From: Klebsormidium nitens
Taxonomy: Eukaryota; Plantae; Klebsormidiophyceae
Assembly (NCBI GenBank): GCA_000708835.1
Contig: DF237284.1
Location: 52,886 to 103,371 of the forward strand
Reading direction: 5' to 3'
Length of the DNA: 50,486 nucleotides
In this document: in pieces, positions 9,901-12,582 of the stretch
Layout of the letters: every line of letters starts with the position of its first letter
Numbering within the stretch: the stretch's first letter is position 1
Notes under the pieces: model-generated
Told to the model about the DNA's origin: nothing
Seen by the model: the letters and a program-made list of their open reading frames with translations, nothing else
Database searches by the model: none
Translations under genes and position numbers: made by a program

Positions 9901-12582
9901 AGTGATTCTGTTGACAACAGGCACGTGATGATCCAGGTTTAACACGTCAGAAGGGTCAGACCAAACAGACCGACGGGTCGTACCTGTGAATGTACGGATT
10001 TGCACCGAGCGCGGACAGAGGAGACCTGCGCCCTCAGGCTTCGGACCAATGGCTGCCACAGGATCGAGCCGCGAAACATGGAGATTGTAAAAAAAAGCCC
10101 TTTGATAAGCGGAATCGCTGAGAATCAGCATCTACTGGTCGTGGTCAGAAAAGGTCTTGCACGGAGAGGAGGGTAAATATGTGAGCGGACAGCGGAGCGG
10201 ATCAAACAGAACGCAGGGACACCGTGCGGTTGACCAACCAAGTCGGTCATCCTCATGCAGGCGGTTTCGCGGCACGCTCTGGGAGTCCGCACGAGTCTTG
10301 TCTCAAGCAGACTTCTTTCCGGGAAAAGGTTCAAGGATCGGAAAAACAAGCACTCTGAACGACATTGTCTCCATTCTTTGTGCAGGTGGACTCGCAGTCG
10401 CCTCGGGGGTTCGGACGACCCCTGTGCCCTGGGAATTGGTCCTGAAGTTTTGCACAGATGTAACTCGGAAACCCCCAAGAATACAGAAACAAACCAAAGC
10501 CAAGCCACTATGCGACCAGTCAATCGGCTCCTCGTTGAACACAGGCGGACTCGCACTATGCCCCGGGAGTTCAGACGACCCGCGTGTCCGGGAGGTCGTT
10601 CGGTGGCACAAGGTGAACGGCTCGAAGACGTCACCCGAAGCTGTGATCGAACAAAGATGCAAAACGACTTTGTATCTTTCAACCACCTTTTCCATATTGT
10701 TTGCTTTTCTAACACAGGCGGAGTCGGACTACGTGCCCGGCGTCCAGACGACCCGCGTCTCCGGCGAGGTCGTTCGGTGGCACAAAGTGAACGGCTCGGA
10801 GGCCCAACTCAACACTCTCCTCAAGGGGCAATGGTCTCTTTCAAACGAACAGAAGCCGAAGACACTCAATTCGCAACCGTAAACCAGCTTTTCCGTCTCA
10901 ACACAGGCGGAGTCGCATTATGCCCCGAGGGTCCCGACGATCCGCATGTCCGGCGAGGTTGCTTCTGAATAGTTCACAGAACTTCAAACCAAGATCCCAA
11001 ATGTTGAATCAAGCAGAACCCAGAGGCAGTGTGCGACCCGTTGACCAACTTTTCCGTCCTAACTCAGGCGGACTCGCACTACGCGCCCGGCGTTCAGACG
11101 ACCCGCGTCTCTGGCGAGGTGGTTCGGTGGCACAAGGTGAACGGCTCGGAGGCGGTCGCGGCGGGGGAGTACATCGAGATGCTGGAGGGCGAGGTGCGCG
11201 GGCTGCGCGCGCAACTAGAGCGGAGCCAGCGGAGCGCCGCGGGCGGGAATCAGCTGCTGGACTACCTTAAGGCGCTGCAGCCGCCGAACCTGCAGGTGAG
11301 GCTGAAGGGACGCCGGGGTGCGACGTCATCCCCCTCTTAGTGTTGTAGTGCGAATGGAGGGGGGATAAGTGAGTGGCTATGTGAGGTGATGTTGGGAGTG
11401 GTGAGTTGGCGTAGTGGTTGCTCAGGATCTGCAGGGATGATCCTACTCTAGGATTGGCCTCATCGAATCTGATGCTTGGTTGTTTGCACGCTGACGGATG
11501 CACACTTCTGAAGTGAGATGTTGCAGCGTGTGGTCGTATTGGCGTTATTGCTCGCAGGACCTTTTTAGAAAGGAATTGCCTGGGTCTAATGTTGAGAGCG
11601 TCCTTACGACGCGAAAACCTGACGTTCGAATTGAGCCTGAGGTCGGAGCTACAGTATGTTAACAGGGAAATTACGTTGGAGATATCTCCCGATAGGGATC
11701 CGCAGAGGGTCGAATGCTTCCTGCGTTACATGCTGAGCAACTCCATGCTTCTGGTCTTGACTGATCTGCAAACATTTTGCATACACTTTTCTTTCCTTCC
11801 TGCAGGAATTGACGAGTAGTGCAGGGGAGGACGCACTAGAAGCAATGAACTCCTTCATCCAGAGGCTGATGGGTATATCAGACTCTGCGGAACTGAAGGT
11901 AAGCTATTTTTCTTAGGATAATTTGTGATTCGCTGCCCATCTACGCACTAATGACTAACTTCGAAGGAGCTGACTCGCTTCTCGTCCGTCAGGCCAGGTT
12001 CGGTGCTTCGGTTCTAGGTGCTTGGGTTAAGTTTTCGCTCTCGAAAAAAATCACTCAAATTGGCTGAGCGAAGCCTCTCCGCAATACGTAAGTTACTCAG
12101 CACCTAAGCCAGCTCTTGCTAATGTGCCTGCCTCTGCCACAACGAGATAAGAACTTTCGGCTCCGGAAACCCAATTGCAGCTAGTCTCGCAGGGGTGTTT
12201 ACGGAAGAGGGTCTGCTGTTGTCGTTCTTTTGATTGGAAAAGGATTGATGCTTGGAATGCTTGTGATTGCTTCAACACTCACAGGCAGGATAATATATAC
12301 AGCTGAATTATTGATCATAGCGACCTCCACATTCTTCCTCGGACGAAAACCAATCTCGGGAGCAAAAGGGGGATCACACGCAACTTTAGCCAACCGCTCC
12401 TCCGATCATTGCAGGCTTCCTCCTCGGTAACAACGGCCACAGAGCTAGCTAAATTGCTTTATTGGTTGATGGTAGTTGGTTACAGTATCCGCAGCATAGA
12501 GGTCCGGTTCGACATGGAAAGAACGCTAGGAGTCCCAATAACTTCGAAACTCGGTGAACTGCCACCAGGGGAAATATTTTGA
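6994..12582 (+). CDS. DUF760 family protein (like plant UV-B-induced At3g17800), probably plastid-targeted, about 396 aa. Exons 6994-7389, 7916-8005, 8429-8485, 9398-9556, 11068-11295, 11806-11898, 12415-12582
   Basis: In-frame GT-AG assembly gives LLEYVKNVKPEFM, VVDAMRQTVTNMLGTLPPQFFEVTISTVGENLAQLMYSVLMTGYMFRNA, NQLLDYLKAL, ELAKLLYWLMVVGYSIRSIEVRFDMER. N-terminus is Ser/Arg-rich and transit-peptide-like. Confidence 0.92.
9005..9460 (+). repeat. Degenerate tandem copies of the intron-3 acceptor plus the 5' part of DUF760 exon 4 (junctions at ~9032, 9194 and the true one at 9397)
   Basis: gcag|ttctttggagtgaccatcctgacggtgggcgagaacctggcgcagc (9191) and ccaggtgacaatttgcgacgtggcgagaccccggcgcagatcatgtacagcgt (~9039) versus the real exon start at 9398. 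Confidence 0.88.
9497..9880 (+). repeat. Three tandem copies of the 3' end of DUF760 exon 4 plus donor (GT at 9557 true, 9710, 9867)
   Basis: The string gc(g/a)cacacg...tgcaaagag|gtga recurs three times at 153 and 157 bp spacing. Confidence 0.92.
10225..11155 (+). repeat. Six tandem copies of the intron-4 acceptor plus the 5' part of DUF760 exon 5 (CAG ending at 10260, 10385, 10544, 10717, 10906 and the true one at 11067)
   Basis: Repeated cag|g(c/t)gga(c/g)tcg...acgaccc and cggtggcacaa(a/g)gtgaacggctcg. The upstream intronic ttgaccaac is shared by the first and last units. Confidence 0.93.

Follow-up and report, generated by a model that had tools for sequence, protein, structure and literature searches.

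Untranslated splice-junction copies in the introns of a Klebsormidium nitens DUF760 gene: fossils of earlier exon states and possible partners in exchange with the exon

The stretch of DNA considered here (the window) comprises 50,486 nucleotides (nt) of the alga Klebsormidium nitens (assembly GCA_000708835.1, contig DF237284.1, positions 52,886 to 103,371 of the forward strand), and all coordinates given for it count from its first letter. It contains the gene KFL_003350100, which encodes a DUF760 protein as judged by a Pfam match and whose translation of 264 residues is contained exactly in GAQ87160.1. The gene is located on the plus strand and consists of six exons (7916-8005, 8429-8485, 9398-9556, 11068-11295, 11806-11898 and 12415-12582) separated by introns that are all in phase 0. 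All five introns and their splice joints are backed by assembled transcripts from four public runs; this evidence consists of assembled contigs, from which rare isoforms can be missing. The working exon 4 (11068-11295, plus strand), which had been counted as exon 5 in an earlier reading made from the letters of the DNA alone (the sequence-only reading), comprises 76 codons, and the joints from 9556 to 11068 and from 11295 to 11806 are present in all four runs.

Intron 3 (9557-11067, plus strand), recognized by the repeat families D1, D3 and D4 and by alignment of the units, is the host of an array of copies of its own downstream junction. Five units, U0 to U4, are arranged head-to-tail with a spacing of about 126-190 nt, their exon-like starts lying at 10261, 10387, 10545, 10718 and 10907, followed by the exon itself at 11068. 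Each unit is composed of an intron-derived tail, an acceptor and codons 1-29 of exon 4; the parent sequence is thus the first 87 nt of the exon (11068-11154), and all units share a common breakpoint after codon 29. Head-to-tail units that carry an intron tail, a splice site and an exon edge, and that are placed beside the parent junction, identify this as a tandem array of splice-junction duplicates. In the transcript data intron 3 was seen only as an unspliced contig (9528-11095) at about one-eighth of the exon depth.

The units, all on the plus strand, have decayed to different degrees. U0 (10261-10348) is the oldest recognizable copy and differs from the exon at 16/26 third and 13/55 first and second codon positions, and U1 (10387-10449) is likewise old and strongly decayed (6/17 third, 5/35 first and second positions, three gaps). 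U2 (10545-10631) shows seven third-position and two first-position differences, the latter in codons 28 and 29, as well as a 1-nt deletion in codon 16. U3 (10718-10804) has an intact frame of 29 codons with six third-position differences, five of them synonymous and one a change from GAC to GAG, and two at first or second positions. U4 (10907-10960), which adjoins the exon, is exon-like in codons 1-18; beyond codon 18 its end is diverged, contains an in-frame TAG and matches the copy V-1 of a sister taxon.

For comparison, the exons of several relatives were used, namely those of the sister taxon (L001, reached via a fragment protein), of Sp4, Sp5 and Sp6 (L004, L005 and L006) and of a diverged version of the locus in the run X19. 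Copies in the sister taxon are designated V, those in Sp5 X and those in Sp6 Y.

It had been suggested from the sequence alone that the copies are, or once were, translated through unusual splicing. This is rejected at the level of contigs: no assembled transcript joint in the four runs touches any copy, only the canonical joints being present, and the copies themselves are in poor condition for such a role. U2 and the sister copy V1 carry 1-nt deletions, and stop codons are found in U4, X2, X3 and Y4. Nor are the copies complete exons, as they stop at codon 29 of 76, have no dedicated donor and are broken in frame in U2, V1 and U4. Between sister taxa, orthologous dead copies diverge without bias towards any codon position and hence without a sign of codon-aware purifying selection, with 20/172 differences at third compared to 37/343 at first and second positions (ratio 1.08, P=0.77), and the changes private to one copy among U2, U3, V2 and V3 amount to 8 at first or second positions versus 2-3 at third positions. 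The units of intron 3 are therefore non-coding, untranslated tandem duplicates of the intron 3/exon 4 junction which evolve neutrally, and no function is implied for them.

The feature that had drawn attention to the array was the preponderance of silent differences between the copies and the exon. A recount agrees with the five synonymous and three missense changes over 29 codons without any indel that had been reported for U3. For U2, the reported seven synonymous changes, no missense change and one deletion (the third base of codon 16) hold for codons 1-27; the homology however reaches codon 29, and the two omitted codons carry two missense changes, GAG to AAG and GCG to ACG. The null expectation to which these counts had been compared, i.e. 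that neutral decay of a dead copy yields mostly missense changes, implied that one-third of the differences fall on third positions and ignored the lineage of the exon, which adds silent changes only. As the living exon changes almost exclusively at silent sites, about half of all differences between copy and exon are expected at third positions, corresponding to a number of third-position differences per site about twice that of first and second positions. Measured against this 50% null, U2 and U3 together have 13/17 differences at third positions (P=0.025), or 11/15 if shared changes are counted only once (P=0.059). The counts at this array are small and partly non-independent, and the orthology of array units between taxa rests on their tails.

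The null was calibrated in Sp4, Sp5 and Sp6, three close taxa with alignable introns. Between Sp5 and Sp6 the third-position divergence of the exon is 0.107 and that of orthologous dead-copy cores 0.11, so that a ratio near 2 is expected. The unalignable introns of K. nitens and the sister taxon, tried as a neutral clock, exaggerated the anomaly and were dropped in favour of this trio. For 32 copies from ten arrays in four taxa the pooled ratio of third to first and second positions is 2.57 (cluster-bootstrap confidence interval 1.97-3.10); it decreases to 2.39 without the intron 3 array and to 2.16 without both exon-4 acceptor arrays. The best-kept copies (U2, U3, V2, V3, X1, Y1 and Y2) reach a ratio of 6.3, with 44/186 third compared to 14/374 other positions differing, but picking copies with few replacement changes by itself raises the ratio to about 4 in simulations and accounts for part of this value. 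The silent-site bias is thus real, yet much milder than it had been presented.

Two mutational causes of the bias were considered and rejected. Decay of CpG sites or of the GC content at third codon positions (GC3), which had been named as a finding that would overturn the special status of the copies, is without support as the main cause: the observed/expected ratio of CpG in the intron is 0.8-1.0 and the copies hold a GC3 of 0.86-0.93. Sites within CpG account for 38% of third but 26% of first and second positions, and CpG transitions are rare among the changes in the copies. Hypermutable third positions are at odds with the ratio of 1.08 among orthologous dead copies and with private changes that favour first and second positions. 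Set against a living exon, a dead copy should in any case appear half coding-like, and silent-site bias alone is no evidence of translation or of a hidden system.

Many of the silent states of the copies are found in working exons elsewhere. Among the 12 silent states of U2 and U3, nine are present in the exons of the relatives (chance expectation 4.3, P=0.002), including six of the seven in U2, while none of the five missense states was found there. At codons 14 and 15, the diverged version in run X19 shares GTG and TCC, respectively, with the copies, and the K. nitens exon 4 has changed in its own lineage at codon 6 (GCC to GCG), codon 14 (GTG to GTC) and codon 15 (TCC to TCT). Old donor-side copies derived from the end of exon 4 in Sp5 and Sp6 retain TAC (Y) and CCG (P), the residues of the K. 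nitens exon, at two codons where the working exon of these taxa has since changed to TTC (F) and CAG (Q). The copies thus represent neutral fossils of earlier exon states and not coding sequence, and they can be used as such; in the relatives even codons for amino acids that have since been replaced are preserved. The idea of the intron as an archive of past alleles stands to this extent, although the same findings are equally predicted by a plain fossil record.

The variants are distributed among the copies as a mosaic, as had already been noticed: U4 has TAT, GCC and CCG in common with U2, and GAG and GTC in common with U3. When the exon, U2, U3 and U4 are compared, six sites are split two against two, all of them third positions, and these alternate between two incompatible groupings within 40 nt (codons 2-14). 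Codons 2 and 9 unite the exon with U2 against U3 and U4, while codons 5, 6, 7 and 14 unite the exon with U3 against U2 and U4. U2 also has a run of four adjacent third-position differences (P=0.034), for which recurrent mutation is a possible explanation as well.

The two parts of a unit tell different stories of its age. In their tails, U2 and U3 show 61-75% identity to the tail of the exon, near the level of shuffled sequence (58-61%), whereas the cores are 90-91% identical and replacement sites differ from the exon by only 3.4%. If the units had arisen by one duplication and then decayed, an identity of about 90% should remain in the tails; even allowing for tails that evolve about 1.7 times as fast as cores, about 10 differences per 80 nt are expected, compared to the 26 plus several gaps that were observed. 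These near-random tails lead us to reject simple duplication and decay for U2 and U3. In addition, the cores of dead copies diverge less than other intron DNA (57/515 or 0.11 versus 189/1016 or 0.186, P=1e-4), i.e. the homogenized core appears younger than its flanks, as is characteristic of concerted evolution.

Derived states are furthermore shared within species. The exon of the sister taxon and its copies V2 and V3 all have GGT at codon 8, AGC at codon 12 (a replacement) and GTG at codon 19, whereas the K. nitens exon and U3 have GGC, ACC and GTT at these codons, with ACC and GTT also being present in U2. At codon 72, Sp5 has CCG in its exon and in X1, and Sp6 has CCA in its exon and in Y1-3. 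The GAG at codon 2 is present in copies of both K. nitens and the sister taxon and in no exon. Such sharing within a species of derived states that are absent from the orthologous units of the sister is a second hallmark of concerted evolution. Finally, the silent divergence of exon 4 between K. nitens and the sister taxon is concentrated in the duplicated part (7/29 compared to 2/47 in the rest, P=0.023, from 9 changes only), and a second clade shows the same direction without significance (6/53 compared to 1/23) and no effect in exon 3.

The arrays also turn over between close relatives. In intron 4, Sp5 and Sp6 possess four to five donor-side copies derived from the end of exon 4 (L005:6412-7060 and L006:6543-7334), of which there are none in K. 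nitens or the sister taxon. Sp4, which is only about 3% diverged from Sp5 in intron 3, has lost this whole donor-side array (L004:7412-7520), its exon 4 joining what in Sp5 and Sp6 is the tail of the last unit. The sole difference between Sp4 and Sp5 in exon 4 is TTG at codon 75, 4-6 nt from this joint, which equals the state of three copies. Considered as proof of a transfer from copy to exon, this codon is suggestive only, for codon 76 keeps the exon state.

Taken together, the contrast between tails and cores, the species-specific sharing, the incompatible sites, the slow cores, the loss of an array in one taxon and the silent divergence of the duplicated part point to repeated gene conversion or unequal exchange between the exon and its copies, with selection acting on the exon only. 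In this process, the exon under purifying selection accepts silent changes only, and a copy made earlier keeps older silent states, a step that the comparisons above show. The unit core of about 105 nt, from about 20 nt of intron through codon 29 of the exon, would then trade short tracts with the exon and with other units. A transfer from exon to copy would reset the replacement sites to the selected state, and one in the opposite direction would survive only if silent. Silent variants could thereby circulate among the units as a mosaic, while each replacement variant would remain confined to a single copy and the tails of intron origin, without a selected anchor, would decay freely. Silent-only drift of the exon combined with exchange would thus make the copies differ mostly at silent positions without any translation.

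This process was simulated with neutral copies, a constrained exon and conversion of tracts. Simulated exchange raises the silent rate of the exon 3-11 fold, and with rejection at the level of tracts the resulting ratios are 1.1-2.1 for pooled copies and 4-6.6 for copies picked for few replacement changes. In an analytic star model the ratio is (N+1)/2, N being the number of copies. The notion that models with neutral copies never exceed a ratio of 2 is accordingly wrong for exchange that is centred on the exon.

Several points weigh against exchange. The pooled ratio is only 1.1-1.9 under most of the simulated parameter sets, and at most 2% of snapshots contain an array with two copies of the K. 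nitens kind, i.e. with six or more third-position and no more than two first- or second-position differences. The conversion tracts were not directly observed, and the mosaic could be due to recurrent mutation at fast four-fold sites. The excess in the duplicated part rests on those 9 changes, is non-significant in the second clade and is absent in its exon 3, and the slower evolution of cores than of tails could be an effect of composition or alignment. The array in question is moreover the most extreme of the ten, so that ascertainment contributes to the signal. Since a good simulated fit is obtained only with a strong flux from copies to exon, exchange is the explanation that we favour with no more than moderate confidence.

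The best surviving alternative, which we regard as possible although rather doubtful, is a plain fossil record without exchange, in which every copy derives from the resident exon by one event and has since decayed neutrally while the exon drifted at silent sites, the excess at this locus reflecting chance and the fact that the most striking array and the best-kept copies had been singled out. The pooled ratio of 2.57, with a lower confidence bound of 1.97, is indeed close to the null ratio of about 2, and still more so once both exon-4 acceptor arrays are left out (2.16). At the locus itself, counting shared events once brings P to 0.06, selection for few replacements inflates the simulated ratio to about 4, and the copies behave neutrally in comparisons of orthologs. 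This account however leaves unexplained why the tails of U2 and U3 are near random when so few replacement sites differ, why V2 and V3 hold derived states of the sister exon together with the codon 2 GAG that they share with K. nitens copies but with no exon, and why the informative sites give incompatible groupings.

It is also conceivable, but unlikely in our opinion, that the well-kept copies once served as working exon starts and were captured through unequal crossing-over between diverged versions of the gene, or that second-hand selection keeps their replacement sites clean, the copies being frequent donors of conversion to the exon. Capture from a diverged working version, taken on its own, assumes unequal crossing-over between alleles, homeologs or introgressed lineages which placed the exon start of one version upstream of that of the other, so that the copy was a working exon until recently. 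A unit does resemble a pair of orthologs, with a saturated tail, a divergence of about 0.24 at third positions and of about 0.03 at replacement sites, and the nine silent states known from working exons elsewhere are what such capture would leave behind. Diverged versions of the locus are known as well. Run X19 contains the window sequence beside a second version that is about 10% diverged in exons and has its own version of U3, with exon states at codons 4 and 6, and L005 and L006, two diverged versions of the locus, both come from the JGI sample 3300060285. The paired versions in X19 and in the JGI sample could represent a mixed culture, a hybrid or a duplicated locus.

On the other hand, the RNA runs of K. 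nitens show one version without variant letters over 4.9 kb, and no known exon has the full haplotype of a copy. The combination of tail and exon start seen in U2 or U3 was found in none of five other exon versions (Sp2, Sp4, Sp5, Sp6 and the X19 variant), a thin sampling of lineages, and U2 mixes states of different taxa. Capture would further demand repeated sex or hybridization, at many genes, between lineages about as diverged as species, and a slower divergence of the dead-copy cores does not follow from it. Exchange with resident copies covers the same data with fewer assumptions, and we therefore consider capture improbable. If true, it would mean that cryptic sex, hybridization or exchange between homeologs takes place in Klebsormidium and leaves a readable record in introns. 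The sequence-only reading had proposed that the copies were captured from diverged functional alleles or paralogs by offset recombination or gene conversion; such a diverged source is neither needed nor shown, and exchange with the resident exon can give rise to the pattern as well.

Selection on the copies themselves, be it through occasional splicing-in and translation, e.g. of an in-frame cassette of 69 nt ending at the internal GT of codon 24, or because replacement changes are weakly disfavoured in donors of conversion, as theory permits (PMC3924837), might be read from the open frames of 23-29 codons kept in U3, V2 and V3, from the motif of AAG or AAA followed by GTGAAC retained in U2, U3 and V2 and from the ratio of 6.3 in the best-kept copies, but is very improbable in view of the missing transcript joints, the deletions and stop codons, the private changes located mostly at replacement positions and, above all, the contradicting ratio of 1.08 among orthologous dead copies.

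Gene families provide known cases of concerted evolution in which a functional sequence and its non-functional duplicates are linked by gene conversion; the theory of this process has been reviewed (PMC3924837), with cases of transfer from pseudogene to gene in the MHC and in R-gene clusters cited there. As in those systems, a selected member and unselected copies would swap tracts, conversions into the functional member would be filtered by selection, and the copies stay similar for longer than their age predicts and carry mosaic variants. In contrast to gene families, however, the repeated element here is a fragment of about 105 nt (an acceptor and 29 codons) within the gene's own intron, and the K. 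nitens copies are without a promoter, a full exon, a known use or an apparent benefit from diversity.

The origin of the units resembles the gain or growth of introns by tandem genomic duplication across a splice junction (PMC3265369, PMC4974935, PMC2891723), where a head-to-tail duplication also spans the exon-intron boundary, the intron thereby acquiring a spare splice site together with part of the exon and the mRNA frame being preserved. In those cases one intron is created or shifted by a single event, whereas here up to five or six units are found at several junctions of one gene, and arrays of the K. nitens type turn over between sister taxa with signs of later exchange with the exon. 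Tandem exon duplicates and mutually exclusive exons (PMC5740500) likewise have tandem copies with their own acceptor, in frame and with coding-like conservation; unlike these, the present copies are partial, without a dedicated donor, broken in several cases, unseen in transcripts and free of codon-position bias between species. The kind of process is thus known from gene families (PMC3924837), but we found no description in the literature of its action on exon-edge fragments within the gene's own intron with a silent-site signature.

If exchange indeed takes place, intronic junction copies would speed up the silent evolution of the duplicated part of an exon, and the growth and collapse of arrays between close relatives would constitute a testable mechanism of intron-size turnover in a streptophyte alga near the ancestry of land plants.

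Further copies of this type, all on the plus strand, are present in the window. The working exon 3 (9398-9556; joints from 8485 to 9398 and from 9556 to 11068; repeat families D2, D5 and D6) is the parent of two donor-side and two acceptor-side copies. The donor-side copies of its end are located in intron 3, D1 (9657-9709) being followed by GTGAGT and differing at 7/16 third and 4/33 first and second positions, and D2 (9803-9866) being followed by GTGAAC and differing at 7/19 and 3/39, respectively. The acceptor-side copies of its start lie inside intron 2, namely A1 at 9195-9258 (third 6/21, first and second 5/43) and A2 at 9037-9096 (5/20 and 5/39). Two comparison arrays belong to the second gene of the window: a donor-side copy of an exon end at 38534-38586 (third 9/16, first and second 4/33), and two acceptor-side copies at 35279-35500 of the exon starting at 35605, which show no excess (7/28 and 11/57).

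Intron 2 of K. nitens (8486-9397), with the two acceptor copies of exon 3 inside, is absent in three related taxa, where exons 2 and 3 are contiguous (L004:5989-6204, L005 and L006:4989-5204) in genomic contigs that keep the neighbouring introns; its presence or absence represents a lineage-specific gain or loss of an intron. Within KFL_003350100, GC3 is 0.84-0.91 in exons 2-4, which have junction copies, and 0.46-0.58 in exons 5-6, which have none. The silent divergence from the sister taxon is 9/76 in exon 4, far below the 36/87 of exons 5-6.

Two other repeats were observed in the window. Between 15500 and 18200, on the minus strand, a long GC-rich stretch of coding appearance contains at least 11 repeats of about 126 nt (42 codons) and is unrelated to the junction copies. 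A perfect tandem repeat of 60 nt (1.9 copies, 100% identity) is located at 44697-44809.

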